A stretch of DNA of 63,863 nt, filler included, from Ministeria vibrans ATCC 50519 (lineage: Eukaryota > Protista > Filasterea): assembly GCA_943704425.1 (NCBI GenBank). It is 6 parts of 6 records of this genome, joined end to end, with 100 filler letters (N's around TTAATTAATTAA, not from the genome) between each part and the next. Parts side by side here need not be neighbours in the genome. Positions count along the whole stretch, not along the records: positions 29,424 to 61,054 come from CALSCP010002290.1; 5 more parts are not named here. One strand, given 5' to 3'. The position numbers were made by a program, and so were the translations under genes. Shown piece after piece: positions 29,428 through 59,241 of the stretch. The first letter of the stretch is position 1, and each line of letters begins with the position of its first letter. The notes beneath the pieces were generated by a model, which saw only the letters and a program-made list of their open reading frames with translations, had not been told where the DNA came from and did no database searches.

Positions 29428-29470
<43 letters not shown>

Positions 29471-29474
<4 letters not shown>

Positions 29475-29712
29475 AAGAAAAAGTGATAGAGAGAAAGAAA
29501 CAAAGCGATAGAGAGAAAGAAACAAAGTGATAGAGAGAAAGAAACAAAGTGATAGAGAGAAAGAAACAAAGCGATAGAGAGAAAGAAACAAAGTGATAGA
29601 GAGAAAGAAACAAAGTGATAGAGAGAAAGAAACAAAGTGATAGAGACAAAGAAACAAAGTGATAGAGAGAAACAAAGTGATAGAGAGAAGGAAACAAAGT
29701 GATAGAAAGAGA
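29471..29712. repeat. ~22-nt minisatellite GAGAAAGAAACAAAGTGATAGA
   Basis: About 10 tandem copies. Related copies at 37071-37232. Confidence 0.9.
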
Positions 29713-29825
29713 GAAAAAGCGTTGGGAGTGGGTGAGAATAGAAAAAGAGAAATGAGGGAGAGAAGAATGAAGTGGTTGCTAAGGTGAGAGCTGGCACAAA
29801 AAGGATAAAAACATGAAATGTATAC

Positions 29826-31003: not shown

Positions 31004-33785
31004 ATGCGGTCTGCTATGGCACTGTGGCGCATGTTGATGATCATTGGGGCTCTGGTCTCCGTCGGCAGTGCGGTTGAAAAGAAGATGACGATTCGCATGC
31101 CCAACGTCCGCATCAGCCACGCCGACGACTACTATTGCGCCCACTTTGATTTGCCTAAGATGGACGATGTATGGTTCGCCGGGCCTTGCTCAGTTTTTTT
31201 TTTTTGATGTGTTTAAAAATAATTTGACTCAATGTTTTTATATATTTTTATCATTTCAGGTTTCCATTTCGGCATTTGTACCGCGCACAGTGCCAGGTCA
31301 TGTGCACCACATGCTTGTTTACGGATGTTCGAACCGTGCTGCGCCGTCGAGCGAGCCGCATGTGTCGCTGGACTCGTTCGACGACGACTTTACCCTTTCG
31401 GCGGTGCGAGCGTTTGCTTGCAAGAGTATGGGTCCGTGTCCGTCCTCGCAGCAGCAAATACTCTTTGCCTGGGCCCTCGACGCCGACGGCGTTTCTTTGC
31501 CACATGATTCGGGCTTTGCTGTGAGCGGCGTCTCATCGGTCCAGTCGCTTGCACTGCAAATTCACTACAAGGGTGCCGCCGTCGACGACACAAGCGGCGT
31601 CGAGCTTCACTTGACCAATCTTGCGGCGTACCGCGCCGGCATCTACATTCTTGCGAGTGCTTCGCGCACCGCCATACCACCCGGCAAGGACTCGGCGGAG
31701 CTCAAGGCACGCTGTACGTTTAATGGCGACAAGCCCATGACGGTGTTTGCGTATCGCACGCACGCTCACAAGCTGTCGACTCGCATCACGGGTGTGCTCA
31801 CACGGAGCTCGGGAGACACAACTCCTTGGGTGTTTGCCGATCGCAGTCCACAATTGCCCCAGGCTTTTGTCTCTACTCAAAAGTCAGTGGTGATTGCGCC
31901 GGGCGACGTGGTCGAGGCGACGTGTTACTACAACACTCATTCCAAGGCAACCTACACCCATATTGGCTCGGACTCGTCCGACGAAATGTGCAATCTTTAC
32001 CTCATGTTCTACGACCTCGACGGTGGCACATGGGTGTGCACCGACTCGGGCTATCTCTACCATATGTCATTAGGCTTACCACGGTTGCCCCAGCCCGACG
32101 AGTCGCAGTTTGAAACGGAAACGGAAACGGAAACGGAAACGGAAACGGAAACGGAAACGGAAACGGAAACGGAAACGGAAACAGAGTCGGGTTCAAGTTC
32201 GACGGACATTGAAAATCAAGTCAAAGAACAAGAGGAGGAAGAGGAGGAGAATGCAGCGGCGAATATGGATGGAAACGCTGACGAGACGGATGTATTCGGG
32301 ACCTTTTCACTTCTCATCGGCTTCGATCGAGAGTTGACAGACGTTGCGCAGTTGGGTCAAGTGAGTGGAGTGGTGTTGGACCCGGCGGATGCTTCGCGTC
32401 TGTGGGTATTCCATCGTGGAGCACGCGAGTGGGGAAGAGGCACCTACACGTCTGGAAATCGACTTGTTGACGAGACACCCATTGCAAGTGCGACCCTCTC
32501 CGTGGTGGACGCTTTCACTGGACGCCTCCTCAATCAGATGGACTACTCCAAGGGCCGTTTTTACATGCCTCACGCACTTACCATGAGCACGACAAGAGAC
32601 CTGTGGGTGAGCGACGTGGGCTCGCATCTGGTGCAAAAGTTGCGCGCCGACGATGGCACAGTGCTGGTGACGGTAGGCACCAAAATGCAGCCGGGCAGCG
32701 ACCTGTTGCACTTGTGTAAGCCGGCGGGCATCGCACTCACTCCCGACGAGCGTTTTGTATATATCGCGGATGGTTACTGCAACGCTCGCGTGCTCAAGGT
32801 GGACGCGCAATCGGGACAAGTGCTCACGCAGTGGGGCTCGCCCGGCAGAGGGAATGGCGAGTTTGTTTTGCCGCACGGCGTTGCCGTGGCGTCCGATGGT
32901 ACAGTGATTGTAGCGGACCGTGTGAATGGGCGCGTGCAACTTTTTAGCGAACATGGATTGTTCATTCGAGCGTTTCCCGGTAGCTCCGCATGGGGTCCTG
33001 TCTACGATGTTGCCATCCCGCAGGCGGGTCACAGGTCAGTGCTGTTTGCACTGGCAGGCGAACCCAACGACGGTGCGGGTAGTCATCTGACCACTTCGGA
33101 CAACGTTGGGACTGTCGCCGCAGAGTTTGGGTCGGGCGTGTTGGGCCGTGGACACGCTCTTGCGCTCAGTGCCAATGGTGAACGCGTGTACATTGCCGAA
33201 ATTGGTCCAAACCGTGTCACGGTGTACACCACGCCGCAAGGCCGCACTTCCGATAATGGCGATGACAGTGGCGCTGGGGATCCTCAGGTTCAGCCCAATC
33301 AAGACGGCAACGATAGCAATGATGAGGGCACAGACGACACACTGAACGGCGGCGGCGATGATGGCCATAATGTTTCATCTGTGCCTCACGTTTCGCCTGT
33401 CTATGACGCGAGCAACGGCAAGACGGAAACGACGACGCCCGATCGAGTGAGCATACCGAGTGCCGATGAGCCCGTCACGATAAATCCCCTCAACGCACCG
33501 GGTGCGCGTCCCGACTTCAAGTATGTACCCAGCGCCGCCGAGTCCACTGCATCTGCATTGCCCACCGGCTCAACCACCGATCCTGTGACAGACTCGGGCG
33601 CCTCGTCGCTCACCCTGAAGCGTCTAGCTATTGCCTTTTCCGCTCTGGGCTTTGTGGTGTTTGCTGTGACTCTTATCTATGTTGGCGTAACGCTCTCTCG
33701 TTCCCGACATCACAGCCGGCGCTATCACAAGTTGAATATGGGTGCAGATGACATTGGCGATGAGATCTGCATTGACGAATTGTAA
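31004..33785 (+). CDS. PAM: Bifunctional peptidylglycine alpha-amidating monooxygenase (PHM + PAL), type I membrane protein
   Basis: Signal peptide, with intron 31169-31259. PHM copper ligands HVHHM, QIHY, YRTHAH and DEMCN. PAL NHL repeats MPHAL, ADGYCNARV, LPHGVAV and ADRVNGRVQ. TM LAIAFSALGFVVFAVTLIYVGVTL and a short acidic tail. Confidence 0.93.
32112..32182 (+). repeat. Coding (GAAACG)n repeat encoding an (ET)n linker in PAM
   Basis: About 12 tandem GAAACG units in frame. Confidence 0.95.
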
Positions 33786-33953: not shown

Positions 33954-35839
33954 ATGAAGATCTTCATAGCAGTTGTCTGTCTTATTGCTGTACGCCCCGC
34001 CTGGGCTCTGACAACAGAGTCATTGGCGAGTTCTCGGCCCAATTTTGTTGTGTAAACAAACAAACCATTCGGACTTTCCGTCTCCTCCGCAGATGTCACA
34101 CTCGCTGACATGTGTGTGTATGTGTGTGTGTGTATGTATGTATGTATGTATGTACGTGTGTGTGTGTGTGTATGTGTGGGTGCATTGGTGCGCGTAGGTT
34201 CTTCCTTGACGACTTCGGCTTTGGCGACCTGGGCGCAAACAACGCCGCAACCAAGGAGACGCCGCACATGAACGCACTTGCCGCGTCGGGAATGCGCTTT
34301 ACCGACCTCCATGCAGGTGCCAGCGTGTGCACCCCCTCGCGAGCAGCACTCCTTACGGGTCGTCTGGGTCTCCGCACAGGAATCACACACAATTTTGCGC
34401 CTCCGTCTGTGGCAGGACTGCCGACGAACGAGACGACCTTCTCCGAAGTGCTGAAGCAGGTAGGTCTGACTGTGTCTCTCTCGCTCCCAGTTGGTTCTCC
34501 CGACAACAACACGCGAAACTGATTTTTATTGTTTAATGTTTATCATTTCTCAAATGTCCAGAATGGATACAGTACGGCTATGATTGGCAAATGGCACTTG
34601 GGCACCACCAAGGGCTTCCATCCATTTGATCGGGGCTTTGACCACACTTGGATCATTCCTTACTCAATCGACATGGGTTGCAACGACCAGTGTGGCGCTA
34701 CAGATCAGAATATGCCGCGCAATGTGCCCGTCAACGGTCGATGTAAGAACGAGAGCACCCAGCACGTCCTGGAGACGTCCCACCTCTCTCCCGCCATTCC
34801 GTACTACGGTGGAAACACCACGGTGACACGGCAGCCGATGGATTTGTGTGCTCTTGCGTCAACCTATGCTGATGTGAGTACCCGCTTCATCCACGAGCAC
34901 AAGAATGAGCCCTTTCTTCTCTATGCACCCCTGTCACAAATGCACGTTCCTCACGGTAAGGAGAACACATTAAAGTTTGTGAGTGCTTGGGGCTCATCAC
35001 TCACATGTGCAACACTTACCACAGCACACGCACCGCAGTGGACCAACACATCGTCGCGCGGCATTTTCGGCGACACTCTGCGCGAGGCGGACTGGACCGT
35101 CGGGCAAATCTTGAGCGCCCTTGAGAGTGCGGGAGTGCGTAACAACACCTTGGTCATGCTTTTTGGTGACAATGGACCTGTATGAAAACGTTTGCAAAAA
35201 CAGAGGGGACCACCAACAAATATTGTTCTCATCATATACGTATTATACATCGTATTATGCGTGTGTGTGTGTGTTTTTTTTTTAGTGGGAAGTGAAATGT
35301 GAGCTTGCGGGTTCACATGCGCCGTTTACTGGCGAGTGGATGAAGCAGCGAGAGGGCGGGGGAGGTAGCACAGGCAAATTCACCGCGTGGGAGGGTGGCC
35401 ATCGCGTCGCCGGGCTCTTTAGCTGGCCGGGTGTCATTCCATCTGGCTCAGTCAACGGTATGATTGTGTCATTATGTTGGGCGACTCGTTTTTCTGATGG
35501 TTTTGGTACTAGAGGGACTGGCGAGCACAATGGATGTGCTGCCCACGCTGGCGCATCTGAGTGGCGCGTCATTGCCGGCTCATCGGCAGTTTGACGGAGT
35601 GAATCTGACTCCTAATTTACTGAGTGCGACGGCAGCGCCGGCGCACGCAACACTGTTTCATCCGGAGAGCGGAACGGGTACAGTGAGTGGGGGCGGCGGA
35701 GAAGATGCGGAGGCTAAGGGGACCATTATTGCGATGCGTATGGGCGCGTACAAAGCACATTTTCAGACGGGCGGTTCAGCGCCCGCCTGTGGTGGCAAAA
35801 ACGCAAAGTAGGCATGTGTGTGTATGTGCGTGTCTTTGT

Positions 35840-35924
<85 letters not shown>

Positions 35925-36381
35925 CTTTGTGGTGTGTGTGTGTGTGTGTGGGTCCTTGTGGTGTGTGTGCGTGTGTGCGTGTCTTTGTGGTGTGTGTGCG
36001 TGTCTTTGTGGCGTGTGTCTGTGTGTAACTGTGTGTTGTGTGTTGAAAATATGGGTTGTTTTCTTTCTTTTATAGACTCACTGCACATGATCCGCCGCTC
36101 TTGTTTGACCTGTCGACGGATCCCCAAGAGGGAAATGCATTGGACACGTCATTGCCTGAGTATGCGAGCGTGGTTGCACAGATGAAAGACCATCTAAAAC
36201 AACTCATGGCCAACATCAAAGGTAGTGCACAGAGCGACTGAATAGTATATGTGCGAGTATGTTTGAGTGACTTTGTGTGTGGTTCTTTACAGCCGACAAC
36301 ACAACCACAGCGGACTACTCTACTGCTGCGTGGGCATCCCCCTGCTGCAACCAAGCCGACCCTCTTTGCCGCTGCAACTAA
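33954..36381 (+). CDS. ARSG: Arylsulfatase (ARSG/ARSA-like), multi-exon
   Basis: Signal peptide, RPNFVV|[24 protein letters not shown] (formylglycine motif), [41 protein letters not shown] and a C-terminal PCC...CRC. Confidence 0.88.
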
Positions 36382-37040: not shown

Positions 37041-37076
<36 letters not shown>

Positions 37077-37972
37077 AAGAAACAAAGTGATAGAGAGAGA
37101 GAGGAGAAAGAAACAAAGTGATAGAGAGAGAGGGGAGAAAGAAACAAAATGATAGAGAGAGAGAGAGGAGAAAGAAACAAAGTGATAGAAAGAGAGTGAT
37201 TGAGAGAGAGAGAAAGAAAAAAGTGATAGAGAGAGAGAGAGAGAGAAAGGAGGGAGAAAGAATCAGTGTGTGAGAAAGAGAGAATTGAGACAGACACAAA
37301 ATTTCTGACTCTGAAATTTCGTTTGCGTTTTTTCCGCGCTTTCGTCTGAGTCGCAATGTCAATTGACTCAATGGAATCAAGCCACCAGTGCTGTCACGAG
37401 CGGCCAAACAAATTTCACTTGCCTACAGAACACAACCGTTGACTCACAAACACACAAGAGGTCGTTCAACAACAACACTATCATTCTACCTGAACGGCAA
37501 GTTCATAGTAGAAGTCGCCCACGCCCAGAAGCTGCGACCAAAAGCCCTTTTGTGACGCCAGAGGGTCGACTCCAATGGTGCCACACATTTGCTGGGTACA
37601 AGACGAGCGAGTGAGGAGAGAGCGAGAGAACAGAACACACACTTTTTGACAGGACCGCATTTGCAGCGCCACACGCCACTGTTGATAGCCACGCCGACGC
37701 GGACGGCTGCGTGGACGTGCCGCCGAGCCCGTCCGCCCCCTCTGCCCCACCGCACACATTGAACTTACTTGGAAGCGGCGTCGGAACTCATGGTTCTTCC
37801 GTATCCTCGAACGATAGCTGCTCGCGAACGTCTCAAGACGGTCTTTGAACGACGCCATCTGTGTCGTGACCGTCTCCAGCTGCATCTGTTCAATCTCAGC
37901 GCCTTTGTCCGAGAAATTCTTCACAGCGACTTTATGGCGCGCAACCCCTCCGATCCCCACGCCCCGCCGCAT
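36506..37972 (-). CDS. SNF8: ESCRT-II subunit SNF8/VPS22/EAP30, multi-exon
   Basis: [15 protein letters not shown]|[45 protein letters not shown]...[13 protein letters not shown] and EGIAWIDEQ...YW. Confidence 0.95.
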
Positions 37973-38288: not shown

Positions 38289-39357
38289 ATGTTGCACGCC
38301 TTCAAACGATCGCTAAACAGCAGCATGTGCAAGCAAATGCTCAATTACCACAGCAATCCTGTCCCCGACCTACCGCAGTGGGGCGTGGACGTGCTCGAAT
38401 GCGCCAGAACAGGCGACAGCGACCAACTTGAGCGTATCTTTCGCGAGAACCCATCCGCCAAAGCCGACGCCGTCAATCCCATCACTGGGAGGACGCCACT
38501 CATGATCGCGTGCGGCCATGGTCATTTGCGATGCGTCGAAGTTCTTCTTAATGTAAGTGTACGATCAAATGGCGTGTCGCCGTCCGTCATGTGAGGGGAA
38601 GGAAAAGGCGTTTATTCGGGTCGATGAAGTGCTGTGTGTGTGATGACGCTTCTCGTTGTGACAGGCCGGAGCGTGTCCGCACAAGAAGGACTTGATTTGG
38701 AACCATACAGCCCTGTTTCATGCCTTGTCAAACGGCCATCCAAACGTAGAGGTCGTCAAGCTGCTCATTTTGGTGAAAGTCACAAAGAACAATTTGGCGC
38801 GACTATCAAAACTGACACGCGTTATGACTGACGACTCCCGTAGGTCGGGACAAAGCTTGACGTTGTGGATGCCCAAGACAAAACGCCCCTGATCTGGGCC
38901 GTGCGCTATGGGTACATTGATATTGTCGATGTGCTGATCAGGGTATGAGAGCGAGTGAGACAAATTTGGTTTATTATTGTTACGTTTGTTTCAGTGTATT
39001 AATATTTTAAACGCTCGCAATTGTTCTTTCTCAATAGTGTTTAGTATTAAATTCTATTGCGCACATAATTATATTTGTTATAACTATTATGTTCGCATAA
39101 TAATATTATTATTAATTAATAATAATTTTTCGTTTTTATTATTGTAGGGCGGTGCGTCGGTCAATTTCCAAATTGAAAAGTGCAAATCGACTGCACTGAG
39201 CGTCGCGATTGCTGCCGAGCATGTCGAGCTTGTGCGTATGCTTGTAGAACATGGATCAAATGTCAACGTGTGCGACGAGCGGGGTGACACTCCTCTCATG
39301 CGAGCCATTGCGGGACGGAAAGAAAGCATTGTGCGCATTCTTGTGAGGGTAATAATA

Positions 39358-39420
<63 letters not shown>

Positions 39421-41081
39421 CAATCATAAAATTTTAATAATAATAATAATTATTATTATTATTATTAGATTCTCTATGACGTATTAATTTCTTCTTATTC
39501 ATAATGCTTTCATTTGTAGGCCAACCCTCCTCCCTCACTCAAGGTCAAAAATCGCTATGGATTGACGATGCGGTCTCTGATTGAAGCGTGCCTACGTGAG
39601 CACAAAGCAAACATTGTCGAGGCTCTTTTGGAGGTACATAATTATATGGACAAAACCCCAGAATAAGATACTCTAAAATATTGAGGAAGAAGACATTAAT
39701 TCCAATAATATTATTGATATTAATAATAATTTTAATCCTTCTGTTTTTATATACATAATTATACAGTGTGCCTACATTTTGGACGAACTAATGGGTGTTA
39801 GTATTGAAGGTCGTGGCCGACAAAGACGTTCAATGCTGATGTGGGCTGCCTGGCACGGTAATTAAAAACCGCATCTTAAACCTTTGCAATTATTTTCCAG
39901 AATAATGTAATAAAAATAATTATTATAATGATGATTTCCCAGGCAACGATCGGCTGGTAAAAATGCTTGTGCTAGCGGGGGCGGACATTCACGAACGGGA
40001 TCCGTCCAGTGGTTCAAATGCACTGATGCTCGCTGCACAAAACAACAACATTATGTGTGCCGAAATGCTTCTCAAAGTACGCATAACGACGTGTTTGTTT
40101 TTTTAAAAAATAATAATAATAATAATAATTATTATTATTATAATGACGTATAATAATTATTATTATAATATTAAGACCCGCGCGTACGACGATTATCATT
40201 AATAATAATAATAAAATAATTATTATTATTATAATTAACGTCAATAATAATTATTTATTACTTCTTTTCAGGCTGGCGCAGACCCAAATGCACGAGACAA
40301 CGCTGGAAACTTTCCGCTCTGGCACGCTGCTGTAAGCAGACATTACGAGTGTGCTCATGTTCTATTACTCGTACGATACAATGATAAATAATTAAAATTT
40401 TCAACTTATGAAAAGTTGTACATCTAAACCTCTTCTTTATCGTTCACATCGATGTAATTATCATCACTCTTGGACAGGCTGGCGCGGATCCAAACCTGAG
40501 GGGCGAACATAATGCCTCTCCACTTTTTATGTCGGTAGTGTCGGGCGACGTTGCTGTTGCTCACCTGCTTTTGACGTACAACAATCATAATTATTATGAT
40601 AATAATAAGAACGGCATTACAATTACTATTAATTTTTGTCTTTTTTTACAGGGCGGGCGCATTGATTGACCGCACCGACATGCGCGAGAGCCGATCTGAA
40701 ATGACAGTGTTTGACATTGCTCACTTGAGCATGACTGACTTCGTGACGTTCATCGAGCCCTACATGATGCCGACAGTGCGACTCGGCAGGGCAAACGAAG
40801 CGACACCCAGCGCCAGAATGCTCCGCACACGTGAACAAATGATCCTGCTGTTGCTCGAGCCGCAGTGGCGCTCACTGGCGCAACTCGCAAGAGCTACCAT
40901 TGCGCGCGAAAAGATTGCTCAACGCTTGTGCGAACCGCCTCTGCTGCGTGCGACACTTGGGGGCGAACCAGTCACCGTCTCGCACAACGAACTCGACGGC
41001 AAATTTCTGATGCAATTTCTCCATTTGGACGCGCGTCCAAGTCCTCGTCGCGCGAGATCGTACCGAAGCGCAGTGTTATAA
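38289..41081 (+). CDS. Ankyrin-repeat protein with a putative C-terminal SOCS box (ASB-like), many exons
   Basis: Ankyrin motifs GRTPLMIACGHGHLRCVEVLL, KTPLIWAVRYG, GDTPLMRA and GADPN. The C-terminal WRSLAQLARATIAR resembles a BC box. Confidence 0.8.
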
Positions 41082-41263: not shown

Positions 41264-44200
41264 TTACATTGAGCGACAGTACTCGGGCAAACGATCGCAT
41301 TCAATGGCGCGTAGGGCACGGCCCAGATAGGTAACGGTGCCAAACTGACCAGATGGGGCGGTGTCAAAGAAACGAGCAAAAGAAGTAGCGGAGGCGACAG
41401 CAAGTGGGTTGCGGGCGACAGCCGTGTCACTGTCGGGGCAAACATCGTTGTTGATATCGAGCTCAAAGAGACGTACTGCGACACGAACAATCTCGTCGAG
41501 GTTCAACACACCCTCGTGTGACCAGGTGGGCTCGCTCTCGAGAAGCATCGACACAACCGAGAGAGCCTCCACCACAAGCTGGCGCATTTCGGGGACAAGC
41601 ACACACGCGAGCATTTCGTCGACGCGCTCAGCAAACTTAATCTCGCTCTCGGTCATGTCCTGCACGGTCGGGTAGGCGGGCAGCAGGTGGCTGTGGGTAC
41701 TCATGCCACTCGGACAGCATTCAAGGACATGCCAGACACGCTGATAGAACCGTGCCGGCGAGCGGTTGAGGGTGCCGTCAAGCCGTCGCCGACGCAGCCA
41801 CTGGCCCGTGCGACTGGGACGCGAGGAGACAATTACGGACGACTCTTCGCGCAACAGACCTTCGCCATCACTTAGCGAGTTGCGGACCCGTAAAAAGGCA
41901 CCGGTAGGTGCGGCCAAGTTGGATGGGTTCACATTGACCGCAGACACCTCTGTGACGAGCGTCGTCGTTCCAACCTCTTGCGTCACGCCCTCCACCTCGA
42001 TTCGCGCACCGCCCGCATCGGCGTTGTCAATATCGGGGTCGTCTTCGCCGTCCTCTTCTTCGACAAGCATAGAGACTTCGCGTCCGTTATCCTCGTGAAT
42101 CAACGGAGCAATAGGGGTCATGACGATGCTCGAGCGAGGCCGCTTCGACATGAACTGTCGATGGGGGTTCGACGCTGCACTGCTGTGGAAGCTCTTGAGC
42201 GTCGCAATGGCTGCCTCTTCCTCGGCCTTGCTGTCGCCCGCACTTGTTTCCTCCTCCTCCTTGCCGCTCAGCACGCGGTACAGGAGATTTTTGACAACAA
42301 AGGGACCGAGCGACATAAGACGCTCCGCTGCAAGCTCAAGGCTTACGGCCTCGTCGGCGGCATACGAGAGGAGTCCCGGAGAAAGACCCGAGACGGCAGT
42401 GGAGCCCGTAAAAAGCGCGTCGCCCGCTTCGTCCTTACCCAACGATGAAGAGGCGCCTCCGTGAGCAGCTGCGTCGTTCATGCGACGTGTGCATGTTTCA
42501 AGGGCGATCGATGAAAGCTCTTGACAGAGACCGCGAATGATGAGTCCAATGCGCAGACGCGACATGTCCTCGAAGAGTACTGGCTCAATGCGGATCATCA
42601 TTTGCAAGTAGGCCATAATTTCCATGGTGAGCACGGCAGTGCTGACGTCCTCGTTGTACGTGTCGTAGATGAGGCGCGAGATGTCTTCGGGCGCAAGTGG
42701 ACGGTCAATGATGATCTCGCGGGGAGGCAGGCCAATGCTGACACGCTTCTGGCGCAGCAGCAGGTACGACAGTGACTGGGCAATGTTATCCTCCCACATT
42801 TGCAGGAGACCAGCGCTGTGGCGCACCAGCGACCAGAGTCGCATGCGTCCCACTTTGGTGTATATTTCACGAATGAGCTGGGAAACTGTGCCGAGTTCGG
42901 TGCGGTGGTCGAGGCCCACGGTGGCCACCAGGGTGTGGAGCACGTCAAGTTGCTCCTGTAGGGTGGTTGCCGCACGCAGCTTGGCCATGTGATCCGCAGG
43001 CTGCAGCTGCGACAGATCACGCGCGCTCGCTGACGTGCGCATGCCCCCAAGCGTTTGTGCCTGCGGAGGCGGTGCGCCCATGACGGATGACGCGAGAGTC
43101 ACGTGCGATTGTCCCGTGTTCCAGCCGCGTGCTCGTTCGGCAACGCGCGACGCAAGCACCACGCCATGGTGTGAATCGTGTGTAAAGCTGGCAGAGGAGC
43201 TGTTGGCCAGTCGCAAGTGCAGGTTGTAGTTAGTCGACGAGCTGGTGATGAGACCGCGAGGCTGCGGCGACGGGGGCAAAAGGGCGGCGGCAGCGGCGGC
43301 GGTGGTGGTGAGGGGCTCTTCATTGTCAGTGTTGCTGTTGCTGTTGCTGTTGTTGTCGTCGTCGGAGGAGGATGAGACAGATATTTTAACAATGGCCGAC
43401 TGGATGTGCTTGTCGAGCTGGTCCGCAACGAGCTCTGTATGGTGGGGATCAAACTCAAGGCGACAAGACTCGCTGTCGGGAGTGTTGGAGACGGCGGAGG
43501 TGGGATCGGCGGAGAAGATAGGTTCGGTGGGAGGAGTAGGGTTGTTGTTGTGGGTGGGTTGGGAGTGGGGCTGGGAATCGGAGGAAGGGAGTGGCGCAGT
43601 GGTAGAAATGGTAGGGAGGACGAGAGACGGATCGTCGAGAAAGGCAAGGTACTCGGTGCACGACGTGTTGGTCATGTCGTGGTAGCGGCCCATTTGGACG
43701 CGCACACCGTTGCACGAGCCGCTCTGAAGTTGCAAGAGGAGCAGGCGAAGGGCGCGCGAGCCGTGAAGTAGAGACTCAGTTGTAATGGGAATGGTGAGGG
43801 TCGGGCGGCCAATTTCGCGCCAGTGGGAGCGCATAAAAGACAGATGGGATTTGATGTTGTCAAGCATAAGGTCAATGTCGAGGGAGAGGTAGAAGGAGCG
43901 GTCGTCAAGGAAGGTAGGGATGAAGGCGTGCTGTACGCCGCGCACGACGTACAGTTTGCTGGTGGCAAGGGAGCCAATGGTTTCGGAGGGACGGCCCGTC
44001 AGGCCCAGCTGGGCATTGGCCCCCAGGTAGTTGTACAGTGTCATGAGATGGCGTGCGCGACCAATAATAAGCGGGGCGGCTGTGTCGCGCGTCTCAAAGG
44101 GAAGCTCAAGCTCGCGCAAGTGCGACTCGGCGGACGTGTCCTGTGCGAGCAGAACAACCTGCACAACCGGATCAAAGCGGGGCGCGCACAGCTGGCGACG

Positions 44201-45578
44201 TCGATTGAGCGGATCGAGCTCGCCGGGAGCAACAAGACGGTCGACGAGAAGACGAGACATGACGTAGAGACCCTGAGCCCAGAGCATGTTGTGGATGGCG
44301 CCGCAGACACGTGTCTGCGAGTGGGGGTGCTCCTTCTCGGCGGCCACTGCGTCGTGCGGCACGTAGTAAAGTTCGGGGACGGTGGGCGATACCGGATTGT
44401 CGTGCACCAAGACCGCCTGGAGGGCCGCGTCGATGGCAAGGACCTCGGGTGCGGAAGGGTCGTCGTCGTGGTGGAAGAGACGGTCGAGCAGACGAAAGAT
44501 GTAGAAGACGGGCCACTGGCACTCGATACCTTCGAAGACACGCAGCTCGGCCGGCTCGTAGTGTAATCGTGCACGATCCTCGAGCACCGTCATGTAGCCG
44601 TCGCGCAGAAAGCGACAGTAGCCATAACGACCGCTCAGTTTCTTCTCGACGCGCTGTTGTGTGTGCGTGACGAGCAGCTCGTCTTCGACGGCAAACGCCG
44701 GAAAGCCCGCCACGGTGAGCAGACTCGCGTCAATTTCCTTGCTCTTGCTGCCACGGGGCAAGAGCGAACTCAACATGATCTGATTACGTCGAATTTCGTC
44801 GGGCAGCACATGAATGGTGGAAGCAGGTCCTCCGGCGGCGCCAAACAGATTGATGCCAGCGATGCTTTCCAGTGCCGCCTTGGCCATGCCAATGGAGCTG
44901 GCGTTCAGTTCGGTCTCACCGCGGTTGGCCTTGTCGCCGCGCTCCCAGATGCCGTAGTCGGGCGTGCGGTAGGCGACCTGGATGTAGAAGACGAGGTTTT
45001 GCACGAAGGCAACCTCGTTGAGGTTAAAGATGATGTGCACGCCGGTGACGGTCATTTGCGCAAGCATGAGAAGGTACAAAGAGGTAGCATCGATCTGCAA
45101 GTGGCCCCAGCCGTCGTCGGTGACGCACGTATTGCCTGTGGCCAAATCGAATTTGGCGTGGAGTGCGTCCGCCGGATTCTGCGTGTGCTTGAAACGCGAC
45201 ACCTTGTGCGACTGGCGCATCATGGAGACCAGCAGAGCACGCATGGTTTTGACAACGCGCTGCACGAACAAGAGAGGCAAGGACGGGGTCAGTCAGGGCG
45301 AGCGAGCAGGCAACGCGCGCGCTACCTTTTCCAATTCGTAGGCGCGCGCAGGATTGGCGCCCGTCTTCTTGTACGCCAGTGACATGGCCCAGACGGCGCA
45401 CACGGTGTAGACATTGTCGCGGACCCACGCGTCGCGAATGCCGGGGCTCGGAGGGAAGAGACCGCTCACGGGATGCTGCAAAACGATCGTCAGGCGAGAT
45501 GGCCCTTCGTTCCCTGCGCCTCACCTGGTATTTGAGGATCGTCGAGTGCAGCAAGTCATAGTGGTCGTCGAGCTTCAT
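41264..45578 (-). CDS. PHKA: Phosphorylase kinase regulatory subunit (alpha-like)
   Basis: ILKYQ|HPVSGLFP..AWVRDNVY, WGHLQIDATSLYLL, PDYGIWERGDK, FLRDGY, FEGIECQWP, GQWLRRRRLDG.LNR and a C-terminal CaaX (CRSM). Confidence 0.92.
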
Positions 45579-52603: not shown

Positions 52604-54004
52604 TTCTATAATAACAAACATCGCTTTGTTATTCACCACACTTACAATGAATAATACACGTCTCGACTCTAGTGAGTTGCGACTTGCAACTCGTCGATTA
52701 GCACTCGCCACTCATGATCATCCACTCTCAGCTCTCTCGGGTGTCACGCCGAGCGCATTCAAATCGAAAACAAAACAATTCCAAAACAAATATTGGACCC
52801 CTCATTGAGACACGGACGGAATTGACACAGTCGCTCTCGGAAGGAGCGTGGGTTGTGAGCCACGTTGAATGAAATAAAATGACGTTGATCATGATGCCTA
52901 ATGGAAACGCAGCTGTGCGCAAACGCGTGGTTGCGACAATGACGCTGAAATGACGCTCAGACAAAAAAAAAAAAAAAAAAGAGACACACCTCACTTGTAA
53001 CGCTCATATACATAGAAGCAAAGAGCACACCGTATTACGGTATATATTGTGCAAGAGGGGCAGTAGACTGCGTACTGACACAGCTGGACCGTCAATTGGG
53101 TCTCGGAAAGACGTTTTTAAAGAGTCAAAGGATTCGGAGTTCACGGACGTCTGTTTGCTTCTCGCCCCGGAAAACTCGCACTTTCGTCCCTTTCATGCGC
53201 ATGCTTATAGCTTAGTGCAGCACTTTCAACAAAGCACAAGCGGTTCTTTGGATTTCGTTGGGTACCAGCTGCTACATCTCGTGCAGTAAAAGGACGCCAA
53301 AACACAACAATTCATTATTCCATTACGAGCGAAGCTAGCGATTATGCTGTGCTGGTACACTTCACTGCACTATGTCACGACTCAGCAAACGTACAAGTAC
53401 GTCGGCGCCAAAAGCATGAAGTGACTTACCCTTGGGGGCGGGATGAGATGAATAAAAATAATAATGCCTAAGAATAAATTTCGAATAAATTTGTTTGAAA
53501 AAGAAGAATTAATATTGGTGCACCACTGATAAGTAATTGTCAACAGACAACGAGACCATATACAGTTTATACCACACCAATGCACAGCCAGACCCGCAGA
53601 CCGCCCTTAAAATCGAAATTCGAGAAAAACGAAAGAAAAACAACAATAATGTTCCAATATTATAATAATAATAAGCTGGTGCGACGGCCGACACGCTGAA
53701 GTGTCGGGCGGGCGCAACCATCCCTTAACCCTAACCCAGAAGATACGCAAGAAACGACAAAGAGAGGTTGTTTTGATTTGTACGACAAGGGATTATTTCC
53801 GGATATTAGTTCATTATGCTCATATCCAACAACACGCGTTATTGTGATAATTGCACACAAAGAAGAAATGATAGAACATCGTGTTGCACTTGGTTGGATA
53901 GTATATCTCTGTGTGTATAAACTGATTACAGATTATGTTGATGTTGTTGAATTGTTTGTTGATCGCAGTTTATCAAAACGTTAAAACGAGTGTTCACACA
54001 TAAA

Positions 54005-57000
54005 TCATTTATCACGACTATGAAGAAACTCACGACCGGCCTTCTTAGAGTAATCTTGCTTGAACTGCGTCCGCGAGGGCTCAAAATTGGCACTATCGAC
54101 GGAACCAGAACCATAGACGGCTTGAAATTGTGTGCTGATGCCCGGGCCGCGCTCTCTTCGCGCCGTCTTGAACCACTTCTTTCTAAACAATATGAGCCAT
54201 TTCAATTTTAGTGTTGATACGTATCACGTTGGGTCGGTCTCACCGTTGCCTTTGGCGGGAATATCGGTTAAAGAGAGCGACTGCATCACGCGTGATAAGC
54301 GAGCGGTCGTCGCGGATGAGGCGACGAAGAGACTGTTTCTCATTGAACGCATCAAGGACGCCAACGCGGTCGTGGAACGCATAGGCGGCAGCGAGAAGCG
54401 CCGCAATCAAACGTAGCTGGTCGCACGAGCACTGCTGATTCATCAGTAGTACGCGTTGACTAACGATACACAGCGAGTCAACGAGGGACACAAGTTGGTA
54501 GTCACTTTCGTCGTAAGTGAGGAGCGACTGGCACTGCATCTTGATGAGTCGGATAAGGTGGTCAATGTGCGGGCTCTTCTCCAACTTCTCCCGCAGCTCT
54601 TTTTCTTCCACCCCATCGCGAAGAAGCTTCACTGATTTACGCGTTTGCGGAGGGTCTGTGGCGCACAGGTGCCGGCAAATGTACAGCAAACTGAACGCGC
54701 GCTCACTCACACCATGGCTCTCGTACAACCTGATTGCGACATCAAGTTTGCCCGACATCACATACGCTCGAATCAGCTGGCCCCATACAAAGCCATCAGG
54801 CTGATCCAACAGCTCAGGATGTGCCTTCCACTGCGCCTCGTATTTTTTAAACTCCTTGATTGCCTTCTCGAAGCGCGGAATCGGGAGCGAGTTATAGGCG
54901 TCCAGCAGTGTGCCCAGCGAGCGCGAAGAGGGTCGCATCTCCCGGTCGGGATGGTCAAGTAACAACTTGGCGTATTCCCCTTGGAGCTTTGAGCAGTTCT
55001 TTCGATGCAAGTACATCAGTGCGGTAATGGTGCACTTCTGCTGTGGAATCGACCAGTCCTCGGCCATCGTCTTCGCGATACTCTCTGCAGCCTCTTTGTG
55101 CCCATGCTTGACTGCCGCACGAATCAACGCAGCCACGTCAAAGTCGCCCAGCCCAGTGCAAAGTCTGCCTTTAACAGCATGTGGAATTCCTTTCAAAAAG
55201 GCCTACTCAATACAATTATATATTGTTATGAACAAAAACAAAAAGAGGTAGAGTCTCTTACGTTCACGTTTTGGAAGGGGTCATGGCACATTTCAACGGC
55301 AAGCGCAAGGAAAGGTTCACGTAGGTAGGGACCAGGTATGGAGGGATCGCGGCTCAAACAAATTAAAACAAACGAGCGGCGTGCGCGGTCAAATGCGGTG
55401 TTGAGCTCAAGGCGATTGGTGTCAAAGTGAGATGCTACAAGGAAGCGTAAGTGGGACTGGTGACGGGTTTGAGCATCGCGCGATGAAAGCTGTGCAACAT
55501 CACTCCTTCCATCGCCTCCCTGGTCCAACTCGTAGGCACTCCGAATCATCCTGTTAACAAGTTTCTCGAACTCCGAAGTAGCCATGCCCGCGAGGGCTCT
55601 GGATAGGGCAGTTTGCCAGCCGTGTGAGCGCTTGCCCAAGAGTGATTTGGGTGTCGTACGTGCATACGATATCGCGTCTTTCACCAACCAGTGAAGCATT
55701 GGCAACTGACGCACACGGAGAAGCTTGTTGACTGTGTCGTGGTAGAACAGGTCGGGGACAACGTGCAGGAGTGAGGCGAGATCAAAATCTCCAAATTCGT
55801 CGAGATGTTCGCACGTTAAGATGCGCTCGAGAGGCTCAACGCGCACACACGGTGACTGAAAGTACGCGAAGAGTTGAAGGAGACGCCCAAGACTCCGGTT
55901 CAGGCCTGGCTCTTCGTTGCTGCTGAGCGTTGCAAAGGCACGCGCGACATATTCAAACAGGGCATCGCTGAAATTAAACGGGAGTTGCGCGTCAAGGTCA
56001 GACAGACTGAGCCCGCCCGAGTTGGGCAGCAGCGTTAGGTAGTGGAAGGAATTCTCGGAGCGCTTGAGGATCTTGTCAAGAATGGAGATGCGAGTGACAC
56101 CAGTCGCGCTATCCGCTAGACTTGGGGTGCTAGACGCTTGCGGGAGGTCTGATTGGGCCGTGACATTGGCACTAGCGGCAACTGAGGGGCTGGCAAAAGG
56201 CGGAAGCGGAGTGGGAGAGGGTGGGACAATAGTGGTGGGGATGGAGGGAGCGTGAGGTGACAGCAGAGTACCCGATGTCGCGGGCTGTTCTTGATCCGAC
56301 GATGAGCGCCCCAGAGCAAGGTCAAGACGATGATTCGCAAAGTCGACGAGAAGGGTTCGATGCTGAGACAGCTCGTGAAGCGAAACAACACACATTGCCT
56401 CGGCGCACTTGCCGACTGGTTCGCAGGTTGCGGTGAAGACAACGTGCACTTTCTGAAGCATCGACTCCGGATCTGTGAGCAATTGGCACAGTTTGTCACG
56501 ATCTTCCACGTTGGTGCATTCGTCGAGACCATCAAGAATGATCAAAATCAAAGACGGAGCATCGGACGACTCTAACACGCTGGTGAGCGGTTGTTGCACA
56601 AGGCAACGAAAGTGCTTGGAAATGTCGTTGACGGTCGTCTCAGCAGCCCACGAGAAGTCAGATTCTTCACAGGTGGCGGAGCTTTGTGTTGCGTCTAATA
56701 GAGCGGTCTGAAACCCAGCCACTCGGTCGCAGAGTTGGTCACACAAAGAGCGGAGGGCATTGGGCGCCGAGCAGCGCTCCTTGTCGCCGGCAGCAAAGTG
56801 GTGCCGCACCGTGACTTGCTCGTTGCCGCCCTTCTGCGAGTGCATGGCATATAACCTTGCGGCAAGAGTTGTCTTGCCAGTGCCGTGGTCTCCATAGAGC
56901 CAAAAGAACTGCTTGTCGCGCCGCCGCGACTCAAGCTCGTCGACCAAGTCGTCTGTGTTGACGAAGTCATCGTCGTCCAGAACCGCGTCCTTGTCGTCGT

Positions 57001-57742
57001 AATTGAGCGGATTGCACGCGCCCTTTCGTCGTTCAATGGTTAACAGGCGCTTCTGGATGACGGTGAGCCTCTCGAGCACGTCCTTATCAAAGACATACTT
57101 TTCGTTCTTCTCCGCCAACTGCAACAGAGTCCTCAGCTCCGCCTGATTGGCATCGGCAGTGGGAACGCCGCGAAGAGCAGCGGCGACTAGATCTCGACGC
57201 AAAGGAGCATCGCCGAGAGAAAGGAGATGGGTGACATCGTCGGGAGACACACCAATGGCCAGGAGCAATTTTTCGAGACTGGTCTGGGTGTCGGTAAACT
57301 CTTTTTTGCTCAAGCTTAACTCGCGACCAAAGTGTGCCCACCGGTTGCGGGATGTGCGTAGATTCTTCGCCTCGGTCTTGACTTTCGACTCTTTGCAGTA
57401 TTCGAGGAAGTTGAGGACGACAGAGACATCGCTATCGATGTGACTCGCGCTTTTCTGCTTGCGGACGCTGGCCTCTTCCCCTTTAAACTGGGCGACAAAC
57501 AGTTTGGCGACGTCCCATTCGTTCGCAATGCACTCACTGACAACATTAGCCATGACAGGAGCTCTCTTATAGATATGTAGGGATTTGAAAGCTTCCACGA
57601 ACTGCTTTGGGTCGCCCATGGAACGACTCAATTTGTTGTGAACGCTTTGAGCAACACCGAGCGCAAAGCGGCGCAGATGTAAGTTGAGAGCTTGCTCTAA
57701 TATGTAAGCAAAATTCAACCAATTGGCGTGACTGGACTCCAT
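54005..57742 (-). CDS. NLR-like protein: HEPN (CXorf38/DUF4559-like) + NACHT/STAND NTPase + PPR-like repeats (~1200 aa, at least 3 exons)
   Basis: RNRWAH at 57332-57349. Walker A FWLYGDHGTGKTT at about 56870-56893 and Walker B LIILDGLDE at about 56520-56545. GT-AG introns 55203-55261 and 54183-54243 join the three ORFs in frame. PPR-like units include FVWGQLIRAYVMSGKLDVAIRLYE. Confidence 0.8.
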
Positions 57743-59241
57743 TGCGATTGCTAAAAGTTTGATTGGTATTTGGCCGTTTCCCCGTAACCTTGAACTTCGT
57801 CTGGTGGCGGTGACTCAGGTCCGACTGAGTCGTGGCGAACCACCGCAAAAGCCTACACTCGTCTCTAGTTTGCCGGTGGTCGGTTACCGGTTATAATGGG
57901 CAAGAAACGCGTAGTGGGAGGGCGTTGATACTCAAGAGTCGACTGCATCGTTCGGCGCAGAAAAGAAAAGAAAATGAAGAAAACGACAAAAACTCTGTAG
58001 TGGATTGTGTGTTCGACTCCTCTCACCTCTGCACTACGTCCACTAATATTTGTTTTTGGAGTATATAGCGCAAATTTTTTTGAGAAGCTCGATCTCACGA
58101 TCTGGCTGGTGCGTAACTATTTTGTGGAGGGGGCGTTTAATCGTTAGCTTTTTTTAAAATTCGAATCTCTCCAACAACAAACCGACATAGGTACAGACAC
58201 CGCAACACTTTAGTTACCCATATGAGTGCGCAACGCCCTTTCTCGTCGCGTTTTAAGACGAAAACCTAAACTTCACCTAAACCATTCGTTTGACTGAAGT
58301 TTGACTTTCGCCCTGTGTTTTCACGCTACTGGGCGGTGACCGGGAGATTGGGACATCGGGTCACGTTTGGGTGAGTGGGCGACAGAGGAGCATGTTTGGG
58401 GGTGTTTCGGCGCGCCATCGCGCCATGCGTTTTTTTAACGAATTTTTTGTTCATTAAATTTTTTGTTGCAAAGGAGCAGAAAGATACGCACTCGTCGTGT
58501 TTTTGGCTGCTGTGTGGCCCCAAGGGCTCTCTATTGTACTTTTATGATGGTGGCAGCAATAGCGGGGTTAGAAAGGTTCTGGATTTGCCTGGGAACTTGA
58601 GCGTTTTTATTAAGTAGCTGCTTTGCCCGAACTTTGCCCATTTTTTCACACATACCATCTTTGATCTTCTCTGTGTGTTTCTGATTCAATTTTGTCATTC
58701 ATAATAACTCATTATGGAAGGTAGGCGTTGTGAGGTGTAAGAGGGGATATGAAGTCCATTTTTTTTGTTGCGATTTGAAGAAGATTTGAAATACCCCACT
58801 GAGGGAACGTTTGTCTCTGTCCTCATCTTTTCAAATTCTGTTATATCTCTCAATACGGGAGGTGAACCTGGTGGGGGTTGGGAGCGGCGAGGCTTGTAGT
58901 GAAGCGGGAAAATTTTCACGGGAATTTTTTTCCCTTTTGACGTCCTTGCTTTGGACTCGCTTGGGCCTTCGTGTTTCTGGAGTTCTGCATCGTTTTTGTC
59001 AGTGGATGCGGAAAGACTGTGTGCTCAGTGTGCGGGGTTGGAAAGCGGAATTTAACCCTCACTCCGATGAAACTCCAATTTCATTCCTCTTTTTATCTAA
59101 ATTTGAAAGTGAATCTTTCGTCGTAATGCCCTATCACTCCGTAATATAATTATGATTTTCTTCTCTATCAACCCACTATCACGTATATTTTTCTTATGGT
59201 TACGGTTCTCTCTAATTTTCTCTAATTTTTTAAAGGCGAAA

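Follow-up and report, generated by a model that had tools for sequence, protein, structure and literature searches.

A spliced, expressed NLR-like gene of Ministeria vibrans with a putative HEPN-NACHT-helical-repeat layout

The window analysed here is a stretch of 63,863 nucleotides (nt), six joined parts with filler between them, taken from assembly GCA_943704425.1 of Ministeria vibrans ATCC 50519. Its largest named part, a piece of 31.6 kb from CALSCP010002290.1 (positions 29,424 to 61,054), carries on the minus strand, at 54005-57742, one expressed, spliced three-exon nuclear gene that resembles the genes of NOD-like receptors (NLRs). The core of the predicted 1205-aa protein is, judging from its sequence, a NACHT NTPase of the STAND class. 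It is preceded by an all-helical domain, probably a divergent member of the HEPN superfamily, and followed by a helical-repeat tail that leans towards the tetratricopeptide repeat (TPR) clan in general and towards pentatricopeptide repeats (PPR) in one of its units. We regard it as reasonably probable, albeit well short of certain, that the protein is an STAND/NLR-type, trigger-activated switch with a HEPN RNase head, an NPHP3_N-type NACHT domain and a TPR-clan solenoid that includes one PPR-like unit.

Gene model and expression

Three open reading frames (ORFs) of 838 aa (57742..55226), 318 aa (55196..54240) and 66 aa (54205..54005) are read on the minus strand, and the ORF listing together with direct reading joins them in frame via two GT..AG introns, the donors of which are GTAAGA (intron 1) and GTGAGA (intron 2). 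Exon 1 contributes 827 codons and ends in phase 0, and the complete spliced frame comprises 3618 nt, or 1205 aa, with a single terminal stop and none internal. The ATG at 57742 is the first one in the observed 5' leader, in which an in-frame stop is located 27 codons upstream. All homology and fold searches described below were run exon by exon, and the joined 1205-aa protein was used only for numbering and printing.

Public sequencing runs were mapped on the interval 53900-57900, the RNA type of three of them (X6, X8 and X18) being a guess. Contigs of X6 and X8, both from one study, omit exactly 61 and 59 bases at the predicted introns (CT..AC on the plus strand), and a single contig from X6, of 3858 nt, reaches from 53967 to ~57944, that is, the whole mRNA, which is about 3.9 kb long. 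In X18, which belongs to a second study, a loose end reads into exon 2 across intron 2 and fits its joint. The DNA-type runs X1 and X3 match 0.98-1.00 of the words sampled from the stretch including both introns, and therefore both introns must be in these runs; both are also present in L001, a metagenome DNA contig. Although the RNA type of the former runs is guessed, the precise loss of two GT-AG introns in transcript-length contigs shows that they represent spliced mRNA. An earlier note on this DNA, made from the sequence alone, had proposed that the three ORFs are spliced into one protein through canonical introns of 59 and 61 nt and had named RNA data on both junctions as one check. The X6 and X8 contigs cross both junctions and skip exactly the two introns, with X18 supporting the joint at intron 2, so that this gene model now rests on observed transcripts. 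Public runs that contain the stretch include ones labelled 'algae metagenome' and 'seawater metagenome'.

Domains of the predicted protein

The effector-NTPase-repeat order that the earlier note had read on one polypeptide is recovered, with HEPN-like aa 1-175 followed by NACHT at aa 266-470 and by helical repeats at aa 847-1030, and all the motifs it had quoted (NW, WDVAK.F, D...VL..L..C, RNRWAH, Walker A and B, and four helical units) are found where it had placed them. The NACHT/STAND identity of the core is the firmest of the domain assignments made from sequence. In Pfam, NPHP3_N matches aa 270-437 with an E-value of 3.3e-20 (73.4 bits against a cut-off of 24.8), and NACHT with an E-value of 1.4e-8 (35.2 bits against 26.7). 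Both the Walker A (GxxxxGK[ST]; GDHGTGKT, aa 284-291) and the Walker B (hhhhDxxDE; LILIILDGLDE, aa 398-408) patterns are satisfied, and their defining columns are invariant in an alignment (A1) with seven NACHT relatives. The claim that the Walker motifs are intact is upheld by the alignment. More generally, among the families that had been expected from Pfam, NPHP3_N and NACHT exceed their cut-offs, whereas DUF4559/HEPN and PPR do appear but stay below theirs.

An exhaustive phmmer search with exon 1 against 1.84 billion representative sequences retrieved 104 proteins at E <=1e-3 (best, 1.1e-12), every one of which covers the NACHT region only. Nine of the relatives were scanned for domains: all nine contain an NPHP3_N-type NACHT, four have WD40 tails, and NPHP3 and TANC themselves are not among them. 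Several carry MLKL_N, NACHT_N, DUF7708 or PigL_N heads, which we take to be domains familiar from fungal NLRs. A word-based search with the 838-aa ORF, into which the Pro/Ser-rich insert probably drew chance word matches, returned nothing at E 1e-3 or better; a scan of JGI metagenomes with exon 1 detected no relative, and BLAST identified no paralogue within the 31.6-kb piece.

In the N-terminal domain, the quoted motifs occupy aa 7-8 (NW), 76-82 (WDVAK.F), 103-116 (D...VL..L..C) and 132-137 (RNRWAH). When aa 1-200 and aa 60-175 were scanned alone against Pfam, HEPN_Swt1 (E 2e-4 and 5.5e-5, 22-24 bits against a cut-off of 27.5) and DUF4559 (E 2.7e-4 and 7.8e-4, 19-21 bits against a cut-off of 27) were the only families below an E-value of 0.01, and both matches lie over the latter half of the domain, R132-N-R-W-A-H137 included. 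DUF4559 we take to be the CXorf38 family. The same scan gave no match to PF18738, the HEPN_DZIP3-type family. The R132-N-R-W-A-H137 string satisfies the Rx4-6H motif of the HEPN superfamily with Asn after Arg, a residue typical of that superfamily at this position (PMC3710099; PMC9646362). In a protein atlas, the neighbours of the domain are the HEPN_DZIP3, DUF4559 and HEPN_Swt1 clusters at 0.95, a weak lead. Taken together, the suggestive statistics and the consistent motif and architecture make a divergent HEPN domain quite likely. The earlier assignment of this domain to HEPN thus keeps its motif and its two exclusive family matches, but both matches remain below the curated cut-offs.

Other searches with the N-terminal domain were negative: a word-based homologue search returned nothing, even at E 10, tblastn against plasmids gave no match, and a local comparison with the 104 NACHT-region relatives yielded no match. 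As no relatives of the domain were found, no alignment could be built, and the AlphaFold jobs were accordingly run in single-sequence mode. Two candidates were rejected. The sole match of the domain in a sequence search of the PDB, to a lipoate ligase (E 0.31), was judged to be due to chance, and the same verdict was reached for an RN..AH string in P0102, which is located just after a NACHT_N match and does not align to the query.

For the C-terminal tail, the earlier note had described about four units of ~35 aa and had identified them as PPRs. The four units are present at aa 849-989, and exon 2 is predicted to form helical hairpins throughout (single-sequence AlphaFold, pLDDT 49.5), but their spacing is irregular (36, 37, 44 and about 31 residues) and BLAST finds no internal repeat similarity between them. 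The resemblance to PPR is confined to one unit, aa 961-989, which can be aligned with every repeat of the designed consensus PPR proteins, 11 of 29 residues being identical (counted by hand), and is matched in Pfam by PPR (E 9e-5 to 1.3e-3, 19-23 bits against a cut-off of 25) and, also below cut-off, by PPR_2 (E 0.0011) and TPR_14 (E 0.001). The first unit has only a marginal PPR_3 match (E 0.028 to 0.1), the three remaining units have no Pfam repeat match, and no Pfam family significantly matches the final 114 residues of exon 2; no tandem array of PPR repeats of about 35 aa scores above threshold. A PDB match to designed PPRs at E 6e-9 was rejected as evidence for an array: the value is an artefact because one query unit matched ten identical repeats, at 1-4 bits each. 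In terms of the PPR code, the PPR-like unit has Gly at code position 5, rather than Asn, Ser or Thr, and so lacks the customary pair of nucleotide-code residues.

The comparison by AlphaFold and Foldseek, which had been suggested as a means of separating PPR from TPR, placed complexes of designed PPR proteins (dPPR) with RNA and PPR10 first (E 0.06-0.1, not significant), just ahead of importin-alpha and TPR proteins (0.16-0.3), for a model with a pLDDT of 49.5. The atlas neighbours of the tail are PPR clusters, which are commonest in diatoms, although recognition is low (1897). A word-based search with exon 2 retrieved only itself, in the form of an ENA metagenome ORF that is 98% identical. 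In Pfam, PPR and TPR are members of a single clan. On sequence and model together, the tail leans towards an all-helical TPR-clan solenoid, in which PPR is a lean and not a finding; the PPR identity claimed earlier is hence reduced to one PPR-like unit below the cut-off, with TPR_14 scoring close to it.

The end of exon 2 and exon 3 (54008-54182) are strongly basic, with an R-Q-R-Q-R-K-K run followed by a K/R-rich segment, and have no family match. This basic extension could direct the protein to the nucleus, as a localisation signal, or bind nucleic acids.

In a comparison of two natural alleles, variation is restricted to the C-terminal 250 aa. The ENA metagenome contig L001 is 99.5% identical to the stretch over 56051..53669, and all 11 substitutions fall in codons 955-1198 (54030-54819), 7 of them non-synonymous and 4 synonymous, codons 564-954 and both introns being free of changes. 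In a range test, the probability that 11 points on 2383 bases fall within so narrow a span is about 1.2e-4. The clustering may agree, if weakly, with a sensor end that varies or with an allele that has recombined.

Features of the NLR-like gene and of its predicted protein; positions are those of the window
Feature	Positions	Strand	Basis
5' untranslated leader of about 200 nt or more, no upstream ATG	57743..57944	-	X6 contig continues for 44 nt beyond 57900 with no joint; sequence read
Exon 1, aa 1-827	55262..57742	-	ORF, splice donor, RNA contigs
N-terminal all-helical domain, aa 1-175, probable HEPN (Swt1-like/DUF4559-like)	57218..57742	-	Sub-threshold Pfam matches
R-N-R-W-A-H, aa 132-137, Rx4H motif with Asn after Arg	57332..57349	-	Direct reading; covered by both HEPN profiles
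NACHT NTPase domain (NPHP3_N type), aa 266-470	56333..56947	-	Pfam; all 104 exhaustive-search matches align here
Walker A GDHGTGKTT, aa 284-292 (Lys290)	56867..56893	-	Invariant G..GTGK columns, alignment A1
Walker B LILIILDGLDE, aa 398-408	56519..56551	-	Invariant D.LDE columns, alignment A1
Sensor-1 position TCEP, aa 439-442 (relatives TSRP)	56417..56428	-	Alignment A1, seven NACHT relatives
Pro/Ser/Thr-rich low-complexity insert, aa 480-550	56093..56305	-	Direct reading
Post-NACHT region, aa 551-827, no family match	55262..56092	-	Pfam: 0 families at E up to 10
Intron 1, 59 nt, GT..AG	55203..55261	-	Skipped in X6 and X8 contigs; present in L001
Exon 2, aa 828-1147 (last codon split)	54244..55202	-	ORF reading, RNA contigs
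Four to five helical hairpin units, aa 847-1030, putative TPR-clan solenoid, PPR-leaning	54594..55145	-	Low-confidence model helices; sub-threshold Pfam; atlas lead
Sole PPR-consensus-like unit, aa 961-989	54717..54803	-	Designed-PPR alignment; Pfam PPR 19-23 bits
Intron 2, 61 nt, GT..AG	54183..54243	-	Skipped in X6 and X8; X18 loose end fits
Exon 3, basic C-terminal tail and stop TGA (54007-54005)	54005..54182	-	ORF listing, direct reading
3' untranslated region	53910..54004	-	Contigs end at 53910-53967

Possible mode of action and rival readings

STAND NTPases and HEPN RNases (PMC3710099; bioRxiv 2022.07.19.500537) serve as models for the mode of activation, the RNA cleavage, the role in immunity and the kind of ligand that we infer as follows. 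The C-terminal solenoid would keep the protein off until a trigger, be it a protein, a nucleic acid or another ligand, is bound; binding of the trigger by the helical tail would release the autoinhibition, and nucleotide-dependent oligomerisation of the NACHT domain would then bring the N-terminal domains together. The paired HEPN domains would form a composite Rx4H active site and cleave RNA, the outcome of which could be growth arrest, death of the infected cell or destruction of the RNA of an invader. Given that the characterised bacterial STAND sensors made of helical repeats bind proteins, RNA is one ligand option among several. RNA sensing by the tail is unsupported.

Several observations weigh against this STAND/NLR switch. 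Both HEPN profile matches fall short of the Pfam gathering scores, the atlas recognition values (2104 for the N-terminal domain and 1897 for exon 2) are below the level of good evidence, and the single-sequence AlphaFold model of the N-terminal domain, albeit all-helical, has a pLDDT of 41 and Foldseek matches that amount to noise. Among the 1.84 billion representatives searched with phmmer, there is no relative of the N-terminal domain or of the post-NACHT part of exon 1, and consequently no alignment, conservation pattern or paralogue family backs the calls made for the flanking domains. No PADLOC defence model matches. The pN/pS ratio of the variable C-terminal part is about 0.52, so that, despite the clustering of substitutions, there is no signal of diversifying or positive selection. 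Finally, the sensor-1 arginine is replaced by Glu441, with TCEP in place of the TSRP that six of the seven aligned relatives keep fully or nearly; these relatives are 23-31% identical, and the alignment of so short a motif is not secure. The sensor-1 arginine is thought to sense the gamma-phosphate, and the change to glutamate may alter or abolish the nucleotide switch.

Were Glu441 to disable nucleotide hydrolysis or sensing, the gene could encode a decayed or regulatory NLR, that is, a constitutive, decoy or helper form. Such a derivation would accord with the loss of the TSRP motif and with the 70-aa low-complexity insert after the NTPase domain, but Walker A and B are intact, the frame of 1205 codons is open, spliced mRNA is present in several runs and the motif alignment is insecure at the identity levels involved; we consider this very unlikely. 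A non-immune STAND scaffold, in which the N-terminal domain is a structural bundle or an inactive HEPN and the whole protein a nucleoside triphosphate-dependent adaptor comparable to animal NPHP3 and TANC, is unlikely too, although several features would suit it. The NACHT domain is matched best by NPHP3_N, a family in which non-immune scaffolds occur as well; there is a single gene, with no paralogue in 31.6 kb and no sign of diversifying selection; and the HEPN matches are sub-threshold, eukaryotic Swt1-type HEPN domains being often inactive (PMC3710099). Yet the full R-N-x-x-A-H signature is retained, and the nearest relatives scanned are NLR-type proteins, several of them with MLKL_N or NACHT_N heads and WD40 tails, and none is NPHP3 or TANC. 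In addition, orphan, fast-evolving flanking domains are typical of conflict genes.

A different question is what the tail would bind. If its units were true PPRs binding single-stranded, viral RNA, the protein would be an RNA-sensing NLR that answers by its HEPN RNase. The best tail profile is indeed PPR (E 9e-5 to 2.8e-4), one unit agrees with the designed PPR consensus in 11 of 29 positions, the dPPR-RNA complexes and PPR10 top the Foldseek list, and the atlas neighbours are PPR clusters. Nevertheless, only one of about five units scores, and that below the 25-bit cut-off, and TPR_14 claims the same residues, aa 961-989, at E 0.001. The PDB value of 6e-9 is artefactual and the Foldseek values of 0.06-0.1 are insignificant for a model of pLDDT 49.5, the units lack similarity to one another and are irregularly spaced, and Gly occupies code position 5. 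Moreover, the helical-repeat sensors of characterised bacterial STAND proteins bind proteins (PMC13581612). RNA sensing through true PPRs is therefore quite unlikely, and the complete antiviral switch of a unicellular marine alga or protist, in which a PPR solenoid reads single-stranded RNA, NACHT oligomerises and paired HEPN domains degrade RNA, is distinctly improbable. If true, this PPR-NACHT-HEPN switch would be the first RNA-sensing NLR and the first NACHT-PPR fusion, and would extend HEPN-NLR immunity beyond animals and bacteria. Most eukaryotic PPR proteins act on organellar RNA, and this, with the PPR lead from Pfam and the atlas, is what could be said for an organellar RNA-processing factor in which a PPR-like tract and a HEPN RNase are imported into a plastid or mitochondrion. 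However, the N-terminus begins directly with the helical domain and has, by eye, no stretch resembling a signal or transit peptide, literature searches revealed no precedent for NACHT in organellar PPR factors, and the PPR assignment is itself weak, which makes an organellar function far-fetched.

Genomic setting and relation to known systems

The surroundings of the gene in the same piece are ordinary nuclear DNA, with long exons and very short introns; the neighbouring ORFs encode, among others, an acylglycerol-kinase-like protein and an inorganic pyrophosphatase. An uninterrupted ORF of 879 aa at 31146-33785 on the plus strand is of the peptidylglycine amidating monooxygenase type, with Cu2 monooxygenase N and C domains and NHL repeats, and appears bifunctional, and another of 1338 aa at 41264-45280 on the minus strand is phosphorylase-kinase-beta-like (GH15 and KPBB_C). 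Both types are associated mainly with animals, and their presence is notable in a marine microbial eukaryote. Tandem arrays of one purine-rich unit, with the core GAAAGAAACAAAGTGAT after a GA run, are located 7 kb apart at 29445-29716, at the edge of the piece, and at 37059-37249, and the unit may represent a satellite-like repeat that is dispersed. Long microsatellites, of dinucleotides (TG, AG) and of TAA, occupy 35815-36043, 37043-37261 and 39350-39450, and the segment at 39.4-40.4 kb is markedly AT-rich (GC 0.33 compared to about 0.5 elsewhere).

HEPN-NACHT genes rank with the most strongly expanded of the predicted immune genes in corals and bivalves. Between 17 and 83 of them are present per anthozoan genome (PMC8260672), and the pearl oyster has more than 50, some of its NACHT proteins having TPR or WD40 tails (PMC9646362). 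HEPN domains of the CXorf38 and DZIP3 types are combined with NACHT, Death, CARD, TPR and LRR domains in Nematostella, Branchiostoma, oyster and Capsaspora, and HEPN-STAND-TPR proteins are known in bacteria (PMC3710099). HEPN is also listed among the RNase effectors of bacterial STAND/bNACHT/Avs NTPases (PMC3710099; bioRxiv 2022.07.19.500537; PMC13581612), and the helical-repeat sensors of Avs families bind phage proteins (PMC13581612). The earlier note knew of no characterised NLR with this architecture and had allowed that it might already be catalogued; for the HEPN-NACHT-repeat layout, the published catalogues for animals, Capsaspora and bacteria establish that it is, so that its novelty does not stand, except that a PPR sensor specifically is absent from these catalogues. 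Full-text literature searches turned up no description of a NACHT-PPR fusion, and no paper listed by the searches for NLRs of diatoms, other algae and protists describes a HEPN-NACHT gene. No biochemical characterisation of HEPN-NACHT proteins is reported in PMC3710099, PMC8260672 or PMC9646362. A single-copy, compact and expressed example with two short introns could offer a simpler setting for asking whether a HEPN RNase is switched on by oligomerisation of NACHT, and which type of ligand a helical-repeat sensor reads. The gene also bears on the spread of NLR-type cell-autonomous defence among marine protists, which are under heavy viral pressure.

The DZIP3/hRUL138-like HEPN-NACHT proteins of cnidarians and bivalves (PF18738 and PF05729) have, like the layout that is probable here, an N-terminal Rx4H HEPN with Asn, a central NACHT and C-terminal repeats, the latter being TPR, WD40 or LRR, and are presumed to be immune proteins (PMC8260672, PMC9646362, PMC3710099). 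By contrast, in the gene described here only the sub-threshold Swt1-like and DUF4559 models match, not PF18738, no sequence relative of the N-terminal domain was found and the NACHT domain is closest to the NPHP3_N type, with fungal-NLR-like relatives. The gene comes from a marine microbial eukaryote rather than from an animal, and it is single in 31.6 kb, with no visible expansion. The HEPN-NACHT/Death proteins of the CXorf38 family from cephalochordates and cnidarians carry an active-type HEPN N-terminal to NACHT, the order that is probable here, and antiviral RNA degradation has been proposed for them (PMC3710099). Here, however, the DUF4559 match reaches 21 bits against a cut-off of 27, Pfam detects no dsRBD or Death domain, and no zinc-ribbon insert was noticed, no search having been aimed at it. 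With the bacterial HEPN-STAND-TPR, bNACHT and Avs proteins, the protein shares the tripartite logic of effector, NTPase and repeats, but it is encoded by a spliced eukaryotic gene without a PADLOC match.

RNase L, built of an ankyrin sensor, a pseudokinase and a KEN/HEPN domain, would be alike in principle, provided that the proposed mode of action is correct. In RNase L, which is cited in PMC3710099, self-association on ligand binding turns on an RNase of the HEPN superfamily, and antiviral decay of RNA follows. It differs in being devoid of a STAND NTPase, in its ankyrin sensor for 2-5A and in its KEN-type HEPN, and no sequence relation was detected. The subfamily of the best matches, at E 1e-12 to 1e-3, is that of the fungal-type NPHP3_N NACHT proteins (NWD/HET-E-like), with which FWL.G...GKS/T and D.LDEC are shared; these differ in their HeLo/MLKL_N, NACHT_N, DUF7708 and PigL_N heads, in their WD40 tails and in having TSRP instead of TCEP. 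As for P-class PPR proteins (PPR10 and the designed dPPR), aa 961-989 follows their consensus in a helical-hairpin context, whereas a scoring array is missing, the spacing is irregular and the code residues are non-canonical, and the tail is statistically indistinguishable from other TPR-clan solenoids. Overall, the layout is one already known from animals, Capsaspora and bacteria, and what is new is the host, the extreme divergence of both flanking domains and the PPR-leaning tail.

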